Of a DNA stretch of 64,000 nucleotides, positions 13,083 through 60,985 are shown piece after piece. The notes below the pieces were generated by a model, which worked only from the letters and a program-made list of their open reading frames with translations, had not been told where the DNA came from and searched no databases. Numbering within the stretch: position 1 is the first letter of the stretch; each line of letters starts with the position of its first letter. The DNA lies in the NCBI GenBank assembly GCA_038496445.1, contig JALMLS010000071.1, positions 94,181-158,180 on the forward strand, in the 5' to 3' direction. Source of the stretch: Trichosphaerium sp. ATCC 40318 (lineage: Eukaryota; Protista; Tubulinea). A program made the position numbers and the translations under genes.

Positions 13083-14749
13083 TTAAGAAATAAGGAGATA
13101 TAAACAATAGACAATTTTGGTGGCTATGGCTAACCTACAACATAGACTGTTTGAGAAATTGTGCGTGCGTATTGAAACTACAAATTGGTAAGTCTTTTTA
13201 TTGAAACAATGATAACGCAATACCAGTATGTCTTCGGTGATTGCCTCTAAACTGTAGTTGAGTAACAATAGATGTTTAGTTTGTTGTACATTGCTCACTT
13301 GTAGTCCTCTTTCCAATAGGCGTCATAGTTACAATAAACGCAATGATAAGTATACATTCTGTAATACTTAGAATAGTTCTAAAAACAACACTTGATGTGA
13401 CGTGTTCTTCTCTTTCGGTTGTAAATGTAACAAGATGTAACAATGACATTAATAGAAGGGTGCTAAATACTGTAGCAAATACAATCGTAGCAACTATAAC
13501 CAGGACGTGTATCTAGAAACATTGTGATTACATAAACACATGTGAATAGAAGCAAGAAAAAAAGAAGAAAAAAAAAAGGCATTTTGATGTAAATAGTCGC
13601 AAAAAAGATACAAATGATGTCAAACATCTTTGTAAAAATAGGCAAAACATTAAAATTCACTAGGGCTGCACTAAATTCGTCCGAAGGCTTACCTTTTTTC
13701 GCAGTTCTTTGAATGTGTCTTTACTTGTGCTTAGCGTCTTTCTTGTTTTGTATCCCATGTAAATTAAGCTACCAAACACAAATATGAATACAAGTAGTAC
13801 GTAAATAGTATACAACAACCAAACGATCGAAGTATCTCCTCTGATGAAGACCAAAAGAGCAAAAACAAGCAGTTCAACAAAAAAAATAGCTAAAACAAGT
13901 TACATAGATACATCAAGCAGAACTAACTTAATACATGCCTCCAACGACTAAATATGATAGTGTAGATATGAACAACCTCATTGCACGACTTGGTCTGGGC
14001 TCTACAAGCGCCCTAAAGTCTGTAAGTACCAAGAAACCGAACATCAATTACCATAATCTCAATACAAATATTGGTGTCGAAAACAAGACAGCCTTGGCTA
14101 TTCTTTCAATAAAAATCTCAAGCCTCCATGAAATATTCCTCGTATTGAAAGGGTCGAAAACGGCAGAACCAAAATTTCCTATGAAAAAAATAGGCCACGT
14201 GCGTTTTTTTTGACGAAAACGACATAACAAATTGACAATCAGTAACGCGATTTTGCGACTGTATAAAATAAAGTTCTATGCTTGTTAATACGTACCTACG
14301 CAAACCAAGAAAATAAAAAGCCAGAGCATTTTTACAGTCATTGAGTTACGGTTATATGGAGGTTTGTATATTTCGTAGCGGATGACACAATACCTAAAGA
14401 GGACAAACAAGTTAAAACCGGAAAAACTATTCCTAACAAAACAAAAACCAACTGGCTGTTAATCTTACACTGTATAGCTTCCTAGTAGTCCAAATATCAT
14501 GCCAAAAACTATATTATAAGCCAGAACCAATCCACCTTTGTAAAAAGATTAATTTGGATAAGAAAACTGGCAAATCACGTGACATACTCGAGGGCCCAAG
14601 CTGACACCTAGAAAAAAGTTAATTAGAGTAAGGAAACCGTTTATTTGTTACCATTCACCTGCACGCCCGTAGAAACATTCGCATTCTCCATTAAAACATA
14701 ATCCCCCTCCATAGCAATTATTATCAGCGCAGGTTATATTCGGATTCAT
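13083..14749 (-). CDS. EGF-like domain plus multi-pass (about 7TM) membrane protein
   Basis: MNPNITCADNNCYGGGLCFNGECECFYGRAGEW|C gives EGF Cys spacing; successive hydrophobic exons (LAYNIVFGMIFGLL, IVWLLYTIYVLLVFIFVFGSL, VLVIVATIVFATVF, ILSITECILIIAFIV). 3' end uncertain. Confidence 0.65.
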
Positions 14750-14989
14750 CGTCTTTGAATCTTGAGAACTTCAAAGACTTAGTCACTGCCTAACAAATTA
14801 TAATTTTTGCAAGTACATAAACACTCATTGTATTGGTGGTGAAGACAGTAATTTTTTAATTACATGATAGCACTATGCAATGACCTTTACTACTCTCAAA
14901 CAATTACAGCCAGCTTTTGGAACTTGGAACACTACAAACCGAGACACAAAAACAAAGTGCGAAAACGCATTTACTTCATACAATTCAAT

Positions 14990-15200
14990 TTGATTCCACT
15001 GATGTAACAGATGAAGATGTTAAAGTATTGAAAGGTGCGCTCAAATCAACGTATTTCATTGCGAAATAACAGATGAAAGCATTAAATCATTGGCAGGTGC
15101 TTATTCTATTTGTGTAAGCTATTGTGAGCACGTGACATACGAAAGCCTTGCAGTTTTGAAAAGTGTTCACTCTTTACGATTGTGGTACATCTAGCAGGTA
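14990..15200 (+). pseudogene. Degenerate leucine-rich-repeat fragment
   Basis: DSTDVTDEDVKVLKG / TDESIKSLAGAYSICVSYCEHVTYESLAVLKSVHSL LRR-type units; no intact ORF. Confidence 0.45.
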
Positions 15201-15413
15201 TACTATCAAGTCACTACAAGATGCCTCAGTCCAGGTTCTGGGAGAATATTAGATAGGCCACAGTCTTGGTTAGAAACTGCATTATTCTAAACAATAAATA
15301 GTTACAATCACATTTTTCTTATTCATTAAAGACTACCACTGAAATCTGTGAACAGAATGTCAAATAAAATGGTTAAGTTCAGTTTTAAGTAGAATCAACA
15401 AAGAACGCCACCA

Positions 15414-15752
15414 ATGCAAATAAAAATAAAAACACTAACAGGAAAGGATATAATGATTGAACTGGAGCCAAGTGACACTATTGAAAACGTAAAAGTAAAA
15501 ATCGAAGACCAAGAAGGTGCAAAAACAAGATTAAACGCTCTAATCAAGTAAAATAATACATTTGTAGGTATTCCAACTGACCAACAGAGACTTATCTTTG
15601 CTGGGAAGAGACTAGAGGATTGCAAGACTTTAGCGCATTATAAAGTAGAAGATGGTTCTATGTTACACCTTGTGCTACGACTTAGAGGGGATAGCGGTAG
15701 TCATGGTCAGGTCAAGGACGTCCAGAACAACACTACCTGTCGTTTAATGTAG
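15414..15752 (+). CDS. Ubiquitin/NEDD8-like protein, 95 aa, G76D plus 19-aa extension ending in CaaX (CRLM)
   Basis: Exons 15414-15516 and 15568-15752: [95 protein letters not shown]. Missed by the ORF track. Confidence 0.85.
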
Positions 15753-16311
15753 AAGCGACATCTCCTCTTGCTATAATCAAGACCTGTACATAGTTAAATA
15801 AACACAACTAGGAGCCCAAAACCGTTGACTTAGCACTGATTAGTCAGTAAGTGCTCTTCAAGAGACACACCATAAGGATCATAAATACTGTTGAAGGTAT
15901 CAAGTCAATAAGAGATTCACATGATTGGGCAAGGATTGAAATTAGCCATGCTGTGTACCGAATACAATCAATAGTAAATTCAAAAGCTTAACACTATCAC
16001 ATGGCTATTGACTCAAGTTGGAAACTCATTGTACACATTTAACTCTTTTAATTGTTTCAAGGTTGTTACTAAACATATAAAATCAAAATATATTTGTAAA
16101 CGAGGATAAGTCTATCAAATCCTGCAAAGGTACATCCATTTAGCTATATATACTTAACAGTTTGAATGTTGTACGTGTACTTGTAACCTTTTGCAAGTAC
16201 TTGATACCCTTGTCGTTTCATAAAGCTAAGCTTAAATGTTTGTTTTTTAATACAAATATCATTTATTGCTTTTTTTGTTGTAATTTTGTTTATGTTCAAT
16301 CATCTTCTTTC

Positions 16312-17498
16312 CTACCATAACTTATGTGGTTCAGGCCTAGAATGTTTAAGCCACCAGTACTTGCTTTCTCCTTCACCGCAGAAAGATTCAAAGTGTGGTC
16401 TTTGCATTTCACTATAGAAGTGTTTGAAAGCATATATCCTTAGTTCCTAAAGGTTGTTTTATCAAAAGTGTTGTTTGTATAAACAGCTTTAGCTTACTGG
16501 AACATAAGCAGCCATACGATCACACATTTCCATAAACTGCGGTTGAATTTGTGTGATGTGTAAATCAGCAAGCATGGCTGCAGTGCCAACATCCTCATAG
16601 AAGTTTAGCTTTGGTCTTTTTTCTTTTGGCTGATTTGTACAAAGTATTAGTTTACCACGTGGTAAGTAGGACGTTGCGCACAATTATCCAGTAGCTATTA
16701 TACATATGTAATGCTAGGTCATGTGATAGTATATATGCACCGCCAATAGCGTATTTAAGAGGAAGATATTTGCTTGGTACAGAAGAAGTTGAGTCATTGT
16801 ATATTCCTGTAATCCCATAGTACACTCCTCTCTTTGGGAAGTACTTTGAATACTCCAATATCTTGTTTGGAAGAAGCCACGAGTCATCATCACCTTTTTA
16901 AAGGCATTAGATGTCAGGTGATGACAGGCGATGACAGGTTCTGTCGGGTTTTATTTGTGTATCAAAAATTGGTACATTTTAGAATGTAGTCAAAGTTGTA
17001 AGTCTCAATCGCGTATTTTATAAACAACATCGTCTTCATAGAAAGGTCCTCGTATCTATCTACCATTTGAACAAGTTTAATGTCTCCATATGTCTCGTTC
17101 TCTATCTGTCTTGAGCATGAAAGGCTAATTAAAAAAAAACATGCAGATTCCTGTAACAATATTGTTGTTAATACTTACCGTTTCTAAGTTCCTTTATGGT
17201 ATCAGGACCTTTATGTACAAGCTATTTTTAGTGTTTACAGGTTCCACCACGTGTTTCTTATCGGTGTTCTCCTCTGTGCGTATAGCGGTGCCGAAAATAC
17301 TCCAAAAATTATTTTTCTGTGCGGTAGCGATTGGTTTCTTTGTCTAGGAATGTACGGAACTGAATCTCTAATTTTAGCCATAGACGAGACTTCTGGAAGG
17401 CTTAGTTGTATGATTTGATTTTTTGGCCTTGTACTCACAAAAAACAATATTAATATTATACTGTACAATAAGAGCCAATATGATTGCCAGATACGCAT
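16312..17498 (-). CDS. GT31 beta-1,3-galactosyltransferase-family type II membrane glycosyltransferase
   Basis: N-terminal TM; RRTPIRNTWW, ENETYGDI, DRYEDLSMKT, YILKGDDD (DxD), GGAYILSHDLA, EDVG motifs. Confidence 0.85.
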
Positions 17499-17890
17499 TT
17501 GCACGGTGTATAACAAGTGCTATCTTGACAAATAGAGACTACGATTTTAGAATTTATTTCATGACTATGACTCGCTCACAAAATCACTTACAAACTTGCC
17601 AGTATACACGTAATAGACTTGTATATTTGTGGGTAAAGAAACTGATGGTTTTCACTCAAGTAATCGTGAAAGAATATTGGTGACTAAAGCAGTAGGCAGA
17701 TCATACAAATAAATTATCGGACCAAACACCTTCGCATTACTCCAGGCCATTATCACAAATAGCCATTTATAGATATTACAAGGCCATGGCTGTAGAGAAG
17801 ACAAGTCTGTGGTAACAACCCATAGATAAATCGCTCCAAATAGAAAGAGCACATAAAACCGTTTCAACTGTCTCATCATTACAGAACTAA

Positions 17891-18934: not shown

Positions 18935-19642
18935 ACACGATGTATGTTGTGTACCCAATAAAAACGCAAGTAAAGGTCTGGATTAGAAAGTTGTCACAAA
19001 TGGAATTCGGTTAGTAAGGCTTCGTGTGTATTTATTGAGCGTACATAAACACAATAAAGTACCTAACATTCAAGTGTGTTGGTGACTTTTACAGGTTTCA
19101 ACAGAGTACGTAGTTTAATGAACGAATTTAAAAACAGTTGCAGTTATCACCGTTGGCATGGCTATGTTGTTGTAGGTTTTAGTGTAAACAGTATTTTACC
19201 CAGCTCTATGCAACCAATTTGAACCAAAGTCACAACTTAAGGGAGCATAGTATTAGAGAAACACTGAGTACCATCCAAACAACGGTAGTAATTCTTAAAA
19301 GGTCAAAGTATAATAAACGGTAGGCCACTCTCATATCAAATTCATGCTTTTTGCAAAGCCCACACTGGTGTTATAGAAGATGCTACAACCAAGATAGTTT
19401 GTAACTGTAAAGTTCAGTGACTGGACCATTGTCAAATGTTTGAAGGAACTGCTTATGTTGATAGCAAGTCACCTAAAGCGGCTATTCCTTAAATGTATTA
19501 ATTGTCTACACGTGTTTTTTTATGTTACTTAATACTGGTATTTATTGTATCATAAGGATTAAGACGTACATACAAACTCGTATAGCCTGTTGTACCCTAA
19601 TTAGGTCATCGCTATACTCACAAGTATTAAATAGTATTTAAA

Positions 19643-20250
19643 ATGGGCGCACGACAATCAACAACACCTGAGGTAATTAGTTTATGCCAAATGATGTACT
19701 TAAACCAAGCATAGGACATAATTTCTGAAGCAGAGCAATCTTGCCACCTACTACACCTTCCAGTGGAGCTACACCTTATTATCACAGAGCTAGATGTTCA
19801 AGTTTATATCACGTGGGCACTCTTATCCAAGCGCACAGCAAGAACAAGATTTGATTCTGATCTTAACAAACATGGCATGTGGCTGAAAACAAGAAGAGTA
19901 ACCAGAGCTATACCACCTTACGTAATCTCAAAACTAAAAATCATAGAGAGAGGATATTGGAAACATGGTCAACGTCATGGCGAGTCTACTTGTTATTTTA
20001 ACAATGGGAAACTGGGATTACAAAGAACTTTTGTTGATGGAAAACAAGAGGGAGAATGCAAGGAGTGGTATGATAACGGTCAATTAGCAAGCTTGCGGTA
20101 TTATGTCAATGGTGAGGTTGAAGGACAGTACAAGAGATGGCACTCTAATGGTAAATGGTACTTTTAAAAAAGGTCAGCGCCACGGAGAGCAAAAAAAATG
20201 GGATTTTAATGGTGAATTACATGGGCATGTGCTGTATATAAATGATGTAC
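19643..20250 (+). pseudogene. F-box-like/MORN-variant gene, copy C (MGARQS N-terminus; 11-nt deletion near 20158)
   Basis: Exon 1 19643-19672 MGARQSTTPE, intron 19673-19714, CHLLHLPVELHLIITELD; lacks TGTCAGCAATG present in copy D, giving a stop at 20167. Confidence 0.8.
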
Positions 20251-20776
20251 TTCAAACAACAATAATATAAAATAAGAGTGTACTTCCTTGACCAAGGTGT
20301 CCTCCAAAAAGCTTTCTCTGTGTCACTAATACAAAAGAATCATTCAATTTTTCAACTTGTATGGAAAATTTAGCAGGGCGTCCTACTTTTGGACCTTTTT
20401 AAGTAACTTTGTTAACATATTTGCCGATAGTGTCCTATTTGTGCAACAACAGTGCATTAACCACAGCTTTACACCACCGAAACCTGTGAACAGAATGTTA
20501 GAATAACTGTTGACAACTAATACGCAATTGTTTGGGAGAAAACACAACGTCTTAGTGACTATCAATAGCACACTGATGTCGTGTATATTTGTTACATAAA
20601 ACACCACAGCGCACTCGTGCGAATTATATTATATTCAGTAAAGATATGAATTTCAAGGTTGAGCTTAGGTCTCACGAATTCAAACGCCAGCTGAAATGAT
20701 TGACATACTCATTCATCAATCAAAAAAAAAAAGTGTTAAGTTTAGTTTTAAGTAGAACCAACAAAGAACGCCACCA

Positions 20777-20880
20777 ATGAAGATAAAAATAAAAACACTA
20801 CCAGGAAATGATATAATAATTGAACTGGAGCCAAGTGACACTATTGAAAACGTAAAAGTAAAAATCGAATTCAAAGAAGG
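20777..20880 (+). pseudogene. Ubiquitin-like gene fragment (exon 1 only)
   Basis: [35 protein letters not shown], then joined at the splice donor to the 20894 repeat module. Confidence 0.8.
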
Positions 20881-21116
20881 TACCATGACATTTTCATATC
20901 AAATTCACACTTTTTGCAAAGCCCACACTGTAGAAGATGTTACAACCACGATTGTTATTTTCTCTTTGTAATTGTAAAGAACTTTACATTCAGTGACTAG
21001 ACCATTGTCAAATGTTTGAAGGAACAGGTTAAGTTGATAGCAAGTCACCTAAAGCGGCTATTCAAAATATATTTCCCTTTGGTGACAGCAAAAAATAGAA
21101 CAGTTTATTAATTCGT

Positions 21117-30362: not shown

Positions 30363-30632
30363 TTACATTCGTATCTGAAGGAATAATATAGAACCATCTT
30401 CTACTTTATAATGCGCTAAAGTCTTGCTATCCTCTAGTTCCTTCTCAGCAAAGATAATTCTTTGTAGGTTATTTGGAATACCTACAAATGTATTAATTTA
30501 CTTGATTAGAGTGTTTAATCTTGTTTTTGCACCTTCTTTGAAGTCGATTTTTACTTTTACGTTTTCAATAGTGTCACTTGGCTCCAGTTCAATTATTATC
30601 TCCCCTGTTATTGATTTTATTGTTATCTTCAT
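30363..30632 (-). CDS. Divergent ubiquitin-like protein, about 72 aa, stop codon immediately before GGC GGA (possibly a pseudogene)
   Basis: [34 protein letters not shown]|[38 protein letters not shown]; same intron as the 15414 gene. Confidence 0.7.
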
Positions 30633-30673
30633 TGGTGGCGTTCTTTGTTGATTCTACTTAAAACTAAACTTAA

Positions 30674-30995: not shown

Positions 30996-31215
30996 TTGAT
31001 TGTAAAAATCACTGAGATGAGTGTCAATCATTTCAGCCGGTGTTTGAATTCGTGAGACCGAAGCTCAACCTTGAAATTCATATCTTTACTGAATGTAATT
31101 TGCACAACTGCGCTTTGGTGTTTTATGTACAAATATACACGACATCAGCGCGCTATTGATAGTCACTAAGACGTTGTCTTTCCTCCAAACAATCACGTTT
31201 AGCCTGTCGTAACAG

Positions 31216-31967
31216 TTATTCTAGCATTCTGTTCACAGGTTTCGGTGGTGTAATGCTGTGGCTAATGCACTGTTGTTGCACAAATAGGACACTATCGGCT
31301 AATATGTTAACAAAGTTACTTAAAAAGGAAGTACACTCATTTATATTATTGTTGTTTTTAGTACATCGTTTATATACAGCGTGCTCATGTAATTCACCAT
31401 TAAAATCCCAGCTCTTTTGCTCTCCGTGGCGCTTACCTTTTTTAAAAGTACATTGCTGACACCATTTACCATTAGAGTGCCATCTCTTGTACTGTCCTTC
31501 AAGCTCACCATTGACATAATACCGCAAGCTTGCTAGTTGACCGTTATCATACCACTCCTTGCATTCTCCCTCTTGTTTTCCATCAACAAAAGTTCTTTGT
31601 AATCCCAGTTTCCCGTTCAAGTAGACTCTCCATGACGTTGACCATGTTTCCAATATCCTCTCTCTATGATTTTTAGTTTTGAGATTACATAAGGTGGTAT
31701 AGCTCTGGTTACTCTTCTTGTTTTCAGCCACATGCCGTGTTTGTTAAGATCAGAATCAAATCTTGTTCTTGCTGTGTGCTTGGATAAGAGTGCCCACGTG
31801 ATATAAACTTGAACATCTAGCTCTGTGATAATAAGGTGTAGCTCCACTGGAAGGTGTAGTAGGTGGCAAGATTGCTCTGCTTCCGAAATTATGCCCTATG
31901 CTTGGTTTAAGTACATCATTTGGCATAAACTAATTACTTCAGGTGTTGTTGATTGTCGTGCGCCCAT
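31216..31967 (-). pseudogene. F-box-like/MORN-variant gene, copy D (inverted twin of C; 10-nt deletion near 31618)
   Basis: About 19508-20880 matches the reverse complement of about 30531-32102; MGARQSTTPE exon 1; frameshift joins ORFs 31617-31847 and 31216-31731. Confidence 0.8.
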
Positions 31968-32398
31968 TTTAAATACTATTTAATACTTGTGAGTATAGCG
32001 ATGACCTAATTAGGGTACAACAGGCTATACGAGTTTGTATGTACGTCTTAATCCTTAATGATACAATAAATACCAGTATTAAGTAACATAACAAAACACG
32101 TGAGAACTTAAGGTATTTTTACATTGAAAGAAAATGAATTTTTAGGTACAATTTTTGATACCCACCAACGCTACGAAGAACAAACTATATACTCTGCCCT
32201 TCTGATTTTTCCTATTTTAGTGCCTCCGATAGCATAGAAAGGTTAATGCCCTATTGATTTGCAACTACTTGGTTAAGTATAAAATTGACATAAATGTTGT
32301 CTCGTATTGTATTACATGGCCAAGCTTGTAAGGCCACCGATAATAGTAACAATGAATTTATTTTGAATTGACACAAATGAATACAATTCTTTGTGGCT

Positions 32399-53288: not shown

Positions 53289-56231
53289 ATGTCAACTTTT
53301 CTTGTCATCGCTCTAATACCAATCGTTGCTGCCGTATCTGGTTTAGTATGGGTACGTCGGATTTTAAAGTTAACCCGTTAACAGATTCAGTATCTATCAC
53401 GTCTCAGGAGCTATAACCACAGTATTTTATCTGCTCTCAGGAGCTATAACCACAGTATTTTATCTGCTCTTACGCAGTGGTTAGCTTCAGGTATAATAGC
53501 GCGGCTTGGAGGGTATATGAGGAACACGCTAGAAAAAGATACCAAGAACGCCATCAAAGTACAAAGCGAAACTCTGTTAGATATAATCAAGGCGTACAGT
53601 ACATTTTTAAATAAACACAACTAACCAAACCGCCTGTAGCACCAAAAGTACTGTTTTTGGTATTGATAAAGGCGTTGGAGCCATAGAATCAACGGAAGAT
53701 ATCAAAAAGTTTCCTTTGACACGTTATGACACTTACCAAGGTAAAAATGGCTTCAAAACGACTCCTATTGATTATAACATACCCTTACACAATATACAGC
53801 GTATGTAGATCGTATAGCAACTGGTGAGAAGAATGTCATGTCATCTCTTCCTCTCAAAATGCTTGGTACAACTTCAGGAACAAGGTACAAAGTGATTTTT
53901 CGTTGAATCTATTCCCGCCACATTTTCGAACCGTTTTTCGTTTCTTTTTCGAATAAGAACCTCGAATTGGCGTCTGAAAGCCGTAAATATATAAGGCCTT
54001 TATTGTAGAGGTACTAACTTCTTCTACAAGTGGGAGCGTTAAGCGTATTCCTATGGTTAAAAAACAAACAGGGATTTTTTTTCTTCAGGGGATTGCTATC
54101 GCATTAAGTACCCTATGTAAACACTATCCTGGTTGGTTTGGCATGCAAAAGTCACTCAAGGTTATGTTCGAACCTCAGTATAAATACAACGAAGCTGGCA
54201 TTAAGATTGGGCCAAACTCATCTTCTCCAAGTGCGTACAAACCCTTTTGGAGTATAATTTTTTTTCGTAAAAGTTTCACTTTCTTATGCCTTTATAGGCG
54301 AAAGTAAATCGATCATGAGTTTTTACAGTACACCAATGGAAGCTTATATGATTGGTAGTAAATATGTTAACGAAACATTTTACTTACAACTGCTGTTTGC
54401 GTTGAAAGATCGAAATCTTGGCATTTTGGAAGCAAATTTTGCTTCTTTGATTTTTGACCTTCTTGTTTACCTGGAGAACAACTGGGAGTACGAACCTGAT
54501 AGCCGCTACTTTTATAACCAACAAGATTTCTCATTTTTTTTTGTCACGTGACAGTACAAACACCGACTTTATTTTTGACCAATTTGCACTGCTAACCTTT
54601 TTCAAAGAAAACTTGTTGTCGACATTAAAGAAGGAAGAATCCATCCATCAATAAACATACCTATGAAAACACGTAATTTATTAGAGCGTGGACTATGGAG
54701 AGACCCAAAACGTGCAAAGGAGTTGGCTGCTGCCTTCTCTAAAGGTTTCAAGGGTACTTGTTTCAGCAATCAATCAATTTGTTGTCATTTGATCTTGTTG
54801 ACTTACGTGTTAAGGAATTGTGAGGAGGATATGGCCAAACTTGATGTGTGCGCTATGTTGTGACACTGGCAGTAATGCTTTGTATGGTGATAAATTGAGA
54901 TCACGATACTTTGCAAGCTCAGAAGGTTGTTCAAGTATTGAAATATATTCGCCTATTTACGGTGCCACAGAGGTAAGTGCAGTGGAAGTATCAATTACTG
55001 CTTTTGTAAGCTTTTTTAGGGTTTGGTAGGCGTATGTATTGATCCAAAAGTGAAGGCGTATTGTTTCTGTCCTCGATCAATGTAAGGTGCTTTAATTTTT
55101 TTTCAAAACTGTTTGTAAAAAAGGGAGTTTCCTTTGTTTTCTTCACTGCGTTCTATCATACAGGATTCTTTTTCTTTGTTCATCAACCTCTCAGTTTTGC
55201 TTATACAAACTATATTATCTGAGAGCGTTGCATCTGTTCAAAAACACTGAATGCTTATTTGTTTATTAAATTATTGCTTAGGTATTTGGAGTTCATCCCT
55301 GCTGATGAAATTGACTCAGGTACACTATGCCGTTTCTGTTATAAACAATATCAATTAATGTAAATAGAAAATCCTATAGTACTGGATATGACACAAATTA
55401 AACAAGGGAAATCTTACGAGCTTGTAATAACAACATACTCGGGTAAGTTTGTTTTTTTGTTTTCTTGCACTTGTTTTACCTGTGCTTACGTTCTTAACTT
55501 ATTATTAAGGTCTCTTGCGCTATAGATTCGGAGATGTTGTAAAAATACATAGCTACCATAATGAGTGTCCAGTATTTTCTTTTGAATACCGTACAGGACA
55601 GTTACTTGATTTAAAAGGAGAAAAAACAACTGAAATGCAACTTTGGCGTGCTATTACAAAGTTTGTGGATGGTTTAGGATCCAGACTTGTAGACTATACT
55701 GCTTTCCATTATACAAATATAGATCCGTTAGGATGGCCTCAATGTACATTTCATTCAAGTGGTTTTTTTTTTTCTCATTTTTTTTTTACAAACGGCTAAC
55801 CTTGATCCCCTTGTTTAAGACTTTATTGGTGTTGAATTACAAGATTTTGAACGTGAATTAACAGAAGATGAAACGAACGAATTTGACAGAATTTTATGTG
55901 AAAGGTATCAGCTACTGACTAAAAAGGAAGGATAAAGATTCTTTCTGCTTTTTTTCTTATTTTTTTTCTTCTTGTTGTCAAACTTTGTTCTTTTTTAAGA
56001 CTGATATTGGTTACTAGCAACCATGGGTATAGATACCACAGAGAACTAGCGACTATACTACCAGCTCAAGTGATTATTTTTAAAAAAGGATCTTTTGAAG
56101 ATTTATTGGCTTACATACGCAAGACCTCTAAGGCAATCAACCAAATTAAGCTCCCTCGTTTAATGAAGAATCAAGAGTATGTTGATCTATTAATCCGACG
56201 TGCTATAAATTTCTCAAAAAGAGAACAATGA
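53289..56231 (+). CDS. GH3 auxin-responsive-type (GHDC-like) acyl-acid amido synthetase family protein with N-terminal TM
   Basis: FPLTRYDTY, TTSGTSG, SPIYGATE, LEFIP, YELVITT, RYRFGDVV, KGEKT, QIKLPR motifs. Confidence 0.88.
53402..53470 (+). repeat. Perfect in-frame 33-bp tandem duplication (LRSYNHSILSA x2)
   Basis: TCTCAGGAGCTATAACCACAGTATTTTATCTGC at 53402 and 53435. Confidence 0.95.
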
Positions 56232-59937: not shown

Positions 59938-60985
59938 GTCACAACAAGTGTTGTTTTTAGAACTATATTAAGTATAACAGAATGTGTACTTATCATTGTG
60001 TTTATTGTAACTATGACGCCTATTGAAAAGAGGAGTACAAGCGAACAATATAGTCAATCATCAAAGACATACTGTTGTGCAATATTATTCTTTCGATTAA
60101 AGTAGTTTTTTAAGTGTTGTCAGTAGGAACTGATACATATGGTAGTTATGTCTACATGTGTAGGGCCAGTTTTGGTTTACTAAGCTCCTTTGTTGTAGAA
60201 ACTACAAAAGTTAAAAGGTCATACCCACGTGGAATATCTACAAGCTTATCAAATTGCGTTAGACATTCATACTACGTAATACTAACAATGGCAGAAACAA
60301 TTGTAATGGCAGGGTGAGCAATTATGTCAAGTGGAACTGAACTGAGTGGCAAATTTAAAAAAGGCGTAGTGCAAAGAACTAATATTAGCTGAAGGAACTA
60401 GATATACTGGCGGAAGTAAAGATGGCGAACCCCATGGTAACGGCATGTTGATACAAAAAAATGGCACAAACATGGGTTGCCTTCACGGCAAAGGAAAAGT
60501 ACAATACTCAGATCGAACTAGAATTATTGGTGAATTTGACAATGGTCTAGGCACTGAATGTAAAGTTCTTTACAAATACAAAAGAGAAAATAACATTGTG
60601 GTTGTAACATCTTCTATAGCACCATGGGCTTTTCAAGTACGAAACAAACAGCAATTCATAAAAGGTCCGTGTATAATACATGGTAGGACCACGAAGGGCT
60701 TTGGCTTCAAATATACTCAGTGTTTGTCTAATACCAAGTCATAAGCTGAGCTAGCAGCTCCTTAAGTAAGAAAATAATGAGAATTTTGTGGTGTTTTCTC
60801 AAGTGCTAGTGAAGTTATAGAGATGTGTTCATGACTTGGATGAAGTACAGTAGCCATTCAGGTATTTGTACAATGTAATTTTCACAAAAGATATGGGCGC
60901 ATCCAGGACAGATTTTGGGCATTGAGATCAGTTCAGAATTTTTACATGATAAGTGCCCTTGATTCTACCTAAAAAAATTAATAAA
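59938..60985 (+). pseudogene. Heavily deleted mosaic copy of the 10.2-13.4 kb MORN locus
   Basis: 59938-60070 is the inverse of about 13270-13400; 60105-60200 the inverse of about 21640-21740; promoter and MAET start at 60288 as at 12342; MORN fragments; 60898-60980 the inverse of about 10530-10610. Confidence 0.75.

Follow-up and report, generated by a model that had tools for sequence, protein, structure and literature searches.

A lineage-specific, putatively non-conjugatable ubiquitin variant with a CaaX-like C-terminus in the amoeba Trichosphaerium sp. ATCC 40318

Gly76 of ubiquitin is required for adenylation by E1 as well as for cleavage by ubiquitin C-terminal hydrolases, and mutants of this residue are the standard form of DUB-resistant ubiquitin. 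When uncleavable moieties of such DUB-resistant, G76-mutant ubiquitin are placed at the N-terminus, chains are built onto their K29 and K48 and they are degraded by the UFD pathway; alternatively, they signal via their hydrophobic patch (PMC9703124). Membrane-anchored ubiquitin folds are known from the MUB/UBL3 proteins, which are prenylated and bind the backside of Ube2D-type E2s with their lap-bar loop; in AtMUB3, 19 unstructured C-terminal residues lie ahead of the prenyl-Cys (PMC4996978). For prenylation motifs at large, PRENbase uses conservation as the main filter against spurious cases, so that a non-conserved motif counts as a weak prediction (PMC1847700). Among ubiquitin 'pseudogene' variants, UbKEKS is described as targeting proteins (PMC10537958). 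The gene described here, copy A, is by its predicted protein sequence a lineage-specific, non-conjugatable variant of ubiquitin.

Copy A lies in a window of 64,000 nucleotides, in whose numbering all positions are given. Its ubiquitin-like coding sequence runs on the forward strand from an ATG at 15414 to a TAG stop at 15750-15752 and is made up of two exons (15414-15516 and 15568-15752). Exon 1 encodes M1-E34, ends one base into the G35 codon and is followed by a phase 1 intron of 51 nt (15517-15567, GT..AG) within the Gly35 codon, the last two bases of which open the ubiquitin-fold part of exon 2 (15568-15689), which continues with I36 to G75. The remainder of exon 2 (15690-15752) comprises the D76 codon (GAT, 15690-15692), a polar stretch from S77 to T91, the CRLM codons (15738-15749) and the stop. 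Upstream, 15373-15413 holds a 5' flank, which is a candidate core promoter, and a short 5' UTR, both conserved in two further copies, B and C; downstream, a 3' UTR extends over 15753-15815 with AATAAA at 15797-15802. In the preliminary description the gene had been taken for an intact ORF of 95 amino acids. This ORF is not contiguous: the frame opening at 15414 contains 34 ubiquitin-like codons and then runs into an in-frame TAA (15549-15551) in the intron, where it stops after 45 codons, and the 95-residue product requires removal of the 51-nt intron. No contig on record encodes the unspliced 45-residue ORF. An origin of copy A as a retrocopy is ruled out, since the intron is present in the DNA. 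What sets copy A apart from ubiquitin genes is that an intron interrupts codon 35 and that the gene consists of one unit only, being neither a polyubiquitin nor a fusion to a ribosomal protein.

Parts of the locus are contained in three public runs (X1, X2 and X3), which are available as contigs only, none of them on record as RNA, and which were compared with positions 14500-17000; such contigs prove neither ends nor strand nor level of a transcript. A 173-nt contig of run X3 carries the joint 15514|15566 and thereby skips 51 nt with GT..AG ends, and a 224-nt contig of the same run covers 15592-15815 without any difference or joint, the tail included, while neither the intron nor the flanks of copy A are covered by any X3 contig. 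As the contig is spliced and the contigs are confined to 15398-15815, we infer that X3 derives from RNA. A contig of run X1 (161 nt, 15655-15815) shows two differences from copy A and represents a near-identical allele; the difference that is listed, GAT>GAC at 15692, is synonymous for D76, and the second, unlisted one is near the end of the contig. The contigs start at 15398 (X3) and 15399 (X2), and two of them (record 5 of X3 and record 2 of X1) both end at 15815, 13 nt past AATAAA, which suggests that this position is the poly(A) site. It is therefore very probable that copy A is transcribed and spliced and that its RNA is colinear through the tail; most simply, the contigs stem from an mRNA of some 367 nt in which the predicted splice has been made and the tail is complete. 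The concern raised beforehand that the locus might not be transcribed is answered by the splice joint and the colinear tail in X3, provided that this run is indeed of RNA origin. The 3' UTR also shows a likeness to another place in the window, 15753-15810 being 77% identical over 61 nt to 53564-53623, including TTAAATAAACACAACTA around the poly(A) signal. The latter segment lies in or beside an open frame reading ..NTLEKDTKNAIKVQSETLLDIIKA, and the likeness could go back to a small repeat or to an element that the two 3' ends have in common.

The relation of the encoded protein to ubiquitin is close. It matches ubiquitin in 54 of 75 positions (72%; 25/34 in exon 1, 28/40 in exon 2, plus G35), and when the two exons are scanned separately both exceed the cutoff of the ubiquitin family, the beta-grasp profile PF00240 (25.4 bits), exon 1 with 29.7 bits (E 5e-7, profile positions 1-32) and exon 2 with 51.5 bits (E 9e-14, profile positions 34-72). 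The predicted ubiquitin domain is therefore far beyond chance. Ubiquitin proper is near-invariant, differing between eukaryotes by no more than a few substitutions, and with 54 of 75 residues copy A falls outside this range. Retained are the fold-forming residues, the patch residues L8, I44, H68 and V70, the lysines K6, K11, K27, K29 and K48, as well as R72 and R74, so that the hydrophobic patch, K48 and both arginines listed in the preliminary description are all found in the translation; replaced are F4, K33 (by Q), K63 (by D) and G76 (by D). The same description had called the protein a hybrid of ubiquitin and NEDD8, and this goes too far. Given the 72% identity with ubiquitin, and with each exon having only ubiquitin (1UBQ-type entries among them) or engineered ubiquitin, and no NEDD8, among its 60 best solved chains, the predicted product is a diverged ubiquitin and no NEDD8 hybrid. 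Ala72 is the residue on which the E1 selectivity of NEDD8 rests, and copy A has Arg at this position and no NEDD8 among its closest relatives; a few surface positions, K4, K60 and G64, are all that recalls NEDD8.

At its C-terminus the ubiquitin part reads R72-L73-R74-G75-D76 and is followed by 19 residues, S77 to M95, ending C92-R93-L94-M95, with the same letters in the RNA-derived contig of run X3; the LRLRG-D sequence in place of Gly-Gly and the tail with its terminal CRLM had thus been read correctly. A conjugatable modifier presents a C-terminal Gly-Gly, either directly or after processing, and copy A does not. From this sequence, combined with the established requirements of ubiquitin activation, the earlier view of a blocked C-terminus holds as well: G76D would preclude conjugation and normal processing by DUBs. 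An origin from ubiquitin, outside the MUB/UBL3 lineage, had also been proposed and agrees with the 72% identity and with the match of exon 2 to the MUB/UBL3 profile PF13881, which at 18.5 bits (E 0.0022) remains below the cutoff of 23 although it extends into the tail. Among proteins, a word search with exon 2 returned 61 ordinary ubiquitin-like proteins, none with the tail of copy A and none more than 78% identical. A HMMER search with exon 2 against 1.84 billion representatives gave a best 150 that were dominated by polyubiquitins, whose repeat scores are summed, and that are therefore uninformative on single-domain relatives with the copy A tail. Exact DNA patterns of the family had no match in metagenome and viral contigs.

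Where does the tail come from, and does it do anything? Within the 64-kb window no similar coding sequence was found. Its G+C content (48%) is nearer to that of exon 2 (42%) than to that of the 3' UTR (38%). Random read-through of the same composition gives tails of at least 19 codons in 26% of trials, ending in CxxX in 2.3% and in C-x-aliphatic-X in 0.56% of trials. A ribosomal-protein fusion partner and the next ubiquitin repeat were both considered as sources and dismissed, as neither showed any resemblance to the tail by eye. CRLM fits the C-a-a-X pattern, with X = Met placing it in the farnesyl class. One way to read this is that a farnesyltransferase modifies C92, that -RLM is removed and the end methylated, and that the polar linker of 15 residues then anchors a near-native ubiquitin surface to endomembranes, there to recruit E2s and ubiquitin-binding proteins or titrate them, or to serve as a fixed acceptor of K48/K29 chains, much as a MUB/UBL3 protein would but having arisen independently from ubiquitin. 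With its polar character, its lack of predicted structure and its length of 19 residues, as in AtMUB3 (PMC4996978), the tail would suit such a role, as would the lack of Gly-Gly, common to copy A and the MUBs, the weak PF13881 match that reaches into the tail, and the very probable presence of the tail in RNA and, intact, in a second sample (X1). Moreover, ubiquitin-like arrays ending in CVIL or CVIS occur elsewhere, for example in lamprey. Since the ending is rare by chance (0.56%) and the tether, a polar and flexible stretch, has the length seen in truly prenylated proteins such as AtMUB3, the CaaX box may be functional after all. Then again, copy A was picked from a very large scan, in which an event of this frequency is to be expected somewhere, the PF13881 match is under the curated cutoff, and copy A has no second membrane signal in the form of a polybasic stretch or a nearby Cys. 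In the literature, nothing useful was found on CRLM as a substrate of farnesyltransferase, only an unrelated cancer review.

Membrane tethering is also called into question by the comparison with the paralogs, of which the family as it is visible to us has three: B and C in the window and D from run X3. Paralog B (20736-20881, forward strand, at 20777; found by tblastn, blastn and alignment) is truncated and consists of the 5' flank and exon 1 only, the latter identical to copy A in 28 of 34 amino acids and followed by unrelated sequence in place of an exon 2. From the GT onwards, where the likeness to copy A ceases, this sequence partially matches 19331-19487 and 60534-60616. Paralog C (30366-30673, reverse strand, at 30632) has the 5' flank, both exons and the same intron. 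The homology between A and C covers about 300 nt, beginning some 40 nt 5' of the ATG and extending to where the ubiquitin fold ends; the intron is identical in 49 of 51 positions, and the 41-nt 5' flank of copy A is identical in 40 positions in C and in 39 in B. Run X2 contributes a spliced contig that is assigned to the C type by a gap of 3 nt at 15443 and by letters peculiar to C. C ends ..FLQIRM with a TAA at codon 74, the place of ubiquitin R74, and behind the stop follow GGC GGA, codons for Gly-Gly at the exact position they hold in ubiquitin, which indicates a probably conjugatable ancestor with RxRGG at its end. Through this stop, C represents an independent, second case in which the conjugatable end was lost. 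The I44 patch of C is largely replaced as well (L8I, H68F, V70Q), along with Q40L and G47E.

Paralog D (record 6 of run X3) lies outside the window and is known from a difference table and 30 loose letters. It is expressed, identical to copy A over 15664-15703 and shares with it RLRGDSGS, D76 included. D then contains a second copy of a 14-nt unit (15690-15703), a tandem duplication that makes its end DSGSQ-stop; without the duplication the stop would still fall at the position of K84 of copy A, and the next 17 nt are identical in 11 positions. Because D76 and GDSGS are present in the expressed D, the predicted blocked end is common to an A/D subfamily. CRLM, by contrast, is seen in copy A and its near-identical X1 allele only. 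The preliminary description had named conservation of the CaaX box in the paralogs as a check, and as far as the visible copies go it is not found: the frame of D, the closest expressed one, closes behind DSGSQ, that of C closes at codon 74, and B is without exon 2. For PRENbase, it is chiefly a lack of conservation that marks a motif as spurious (PMC1847700). Taking both sides into account, we consider farnesylation of copy A possible but unlikely, and a membrane-tethering function unlikely as well. The start of the tail shared by A and D, D-S-G, is like that of a DSGxxS phosphodegron, of which it lacks the second Ser.

The surroundings of the copies differ. B and C stand behind F-box/MORN-type sequences in a duplicated and inverted cassette. 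These F-box/MORN-variant sequences (19498-20715, forward strand, and 31013-32111, reverse strand) lie upstream of B and C and are each split over several frames, which could represent introns or frameshifts. Copy A stands behind decayed LRR fragments: just upstream, at 14884-15191 on the forward strand, frame-broken, Cys-containing leucine-rich repeats are seen (..DVTDEDVKVLKG.., ..CEITDESIKSLAG..), which look like decayed cassettes of the F-box-LRR type. Further downstream, 17235-17516 on the reverse strand contains an exon-like ORF with a membrane-anchor-like start and the motif RRTPIRNTWW, which recalls beta-1,3-galactosyltransferases.

But could copy A simply be a relic? It might be a transcribed but functionless copy, in which case G76D, the stop in C and the truncation of B would be successive inactivations of a formerly conjugatable gene in a family with birth-and-death turnover, A being the least decayed copy and its tail a neutral read-through. 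The usable C-terminus has in fact been lost in three of the four visible copies, in three different ways, the Gly-Gly codons behind the stop of C survive from what was probably an RxRGG ancestor, copy A lies among decayed LRR gene fragments, and only about 300 nt of copy A, with a minimal promoter, are common to A and C. Between A and C, moreover, 24 replacements (at 166.5 sites) exceed 3 silent changes (at 43.5 sites), giving an omega of 2.2. The same comparison also contains points that speak against decay. In the non-coding parts A and C differ at 2 of 51 intron positions and 1 of 41 positions of the 5' flank, so that replacement divergence is three times that of intron and flank; tested against the silent sites alone the replacement excess is not significant (p = 0.21), and against silent sites, intron and flank together it is (Fisher p = 0.004), with the reservation that the non-coding parts may be constrained or homogenised. 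An omega above 1 combined with a threefold excess over intron and flank is unlike neutral decay. When the changes are polarised with ubiquitin, 14 fall on the C lineage (among them L8I, Q40L, G47E, H68F, V70Q and the stop), a single one, K33Q, falls on the A lineage and 8 are ambiguous, from which it follows that C is the fast-evolving and A the conservative copy; nearly all of the replacements thus concern C and not A. Between A and D the picture is reversed, with 4.5 silent changes at 19.3 sites and 3.5 replacements at 61.7 sites over codons 53-79 and an omega of about 0.21, a small sample of 27 codons rebuilt from the difference table (Fisher p = 0.08). Given this value, the A/D subfamily looks constrained in its fold and in its blocked end, as far as these few codons can tell. 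Together with the intact frame, the correct splice signals and the very probable expression of copy A, and with an end that is blocked in D too, this leads us to regard lack of function as unlikely.

We therefore lean, with moderate confidence, towards copy A being a functional two-exon gene for a ubiquitin variant that can be neither conjugated nor cleaved. It would belong to a young family whose copies are rapidly gained and lost in an amoeba genome with many F-box receptor genes. As D76 would block both adenylation by E1 and any Gly-Gly-dependent cut by hydrolases, the product would stay a free protein of 95 residues. It would act solely by non-covalent contacts of its ubiquitin/I44 face, for example with ubiquitin-binding domains, E2 backsides, DUBs or the proteasome. 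Since K29 and K48 are kept, copy A is itself a likely substrate for chain extension on these residues, with a turnover of the UFD type; the role of K48 acceptor suggested before would be compatible with the known UFD fate of non-cleavable fusions (PMC9703124). The distal tail including CRLM is specific to copy A and would most simply be a side effect of the indels that affect the family's 3' end, and a lipid anchor would then be unnecessary to explain the gene. A more far-reaching proposal is that of a farnesylated, non-removable near-ubiquitin, derived from ubiquitin independently of MUB/UBL3, that presents a true ubiquitin face on endomembranes as one arm of a diversifying set of variants encoded between F-box receptor genes; positive selection would be changing Q40 and the I44 patch in the sister copies, and the variants would be possible decoys or sensors against ubiquitin-targeting factors of intracellular bacteria and giant viruses; as a whole we hold this to be very unlikely.

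A natural ubiquitin copy that cannot undergo conjugation is, as a rule, set aside as a pseudogene. Copy A is very probably expressed and correctly spliced, shares its blocked end with a paralog and looks constrained. If its CaaX box works, membrane-anchored ubiquitin folds would have originated twice, independently, and if the box is inactive, copy A would be an ordinary lineage-specific variant of ubiquitin. The fast, replacement-biased divergence of the family, beside expanded F-box genes, also bears on how the ubiquitin system diversifies in amoebae.

How, then, does copy A compare with the systems described so far? With ubiquitin it has in common the length of the fold, the L8/I44/H68/V70 patch, K6, K11, K27, K29, K48 and R72-L73-R74-G75; it differs in D76 and 19 further residues instead of G76 and in the replacement of F4, K33 and K63. 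NEDD8 differs from it by A72, where copy A has R72, and copy A also lacks Gly-Gly. The ubiquitin 'pseudogene' variants, exemplified by UbKEKS from UBBP4, are like copy A lineage-specific, expressed and diverged, and were likewise first deemed dead; they are conjugated, UbKEKS reportedly retaining a Gly-Gly end, whereas copy A is predicted to be non-conjugatable. Like the MUB/UBL3 proteins (PF13881), copy A has a single ubiquitin fold that lacks Gly-Gly and is extended by an unstructured tether, about 19 residues in length, with a CaaX at the C-terminus (PMC4996978), here in the form of D76, a polar stretch of 15 residues and CRLM. The MUB/UBL3 proteins are farther from ubiquitin and their CaaX is conserved from plants to animals, whereas the PF13881 score of copy A is below the family cutoff and D, C and B are without CaaX; although no member of this family, copy A might act in a MUB/UBL3-like manner only if it is prenylated. 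Poly-ubiquitin-like arrays resemble copy A in that their last ubiquitin-like repeat is without Gly-Gly and leads into a short tail with a CaaX, and differ from it in comprising 600-800 residues of repeats, in their canonical aliphatic CaaX and in their unrelated origin. Six of the best 150 HMMER matches for exon 2 end in CxxX. XP_078740965.1 of Lampetra fluviatilis, an uncharacterised 'polyubiquitin-like isoform X2', is such an array ending in CVIL, and a Logan protein with five near-identical members, its last repeat without Gly-Gly, ends in CVIS. Finally, the Ub-G76V-X substrates of UFD have an N-terminal ubiquitin moiety with mutated G76, a peptide attached to it, and K29 and K48 (PMC9703124), and the N-terminal ubiquitin, the mutated G76 and both lysines are found in the translation of copy A. 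Those substrates are engineered, whereas copy A is a natural gene in which the attached part is only the tail of 19 residues. Copy A would thus be the natural counterpart of the laboratory Ub-G76V and a probe of a free, non-removable ubiquitin face in cells.
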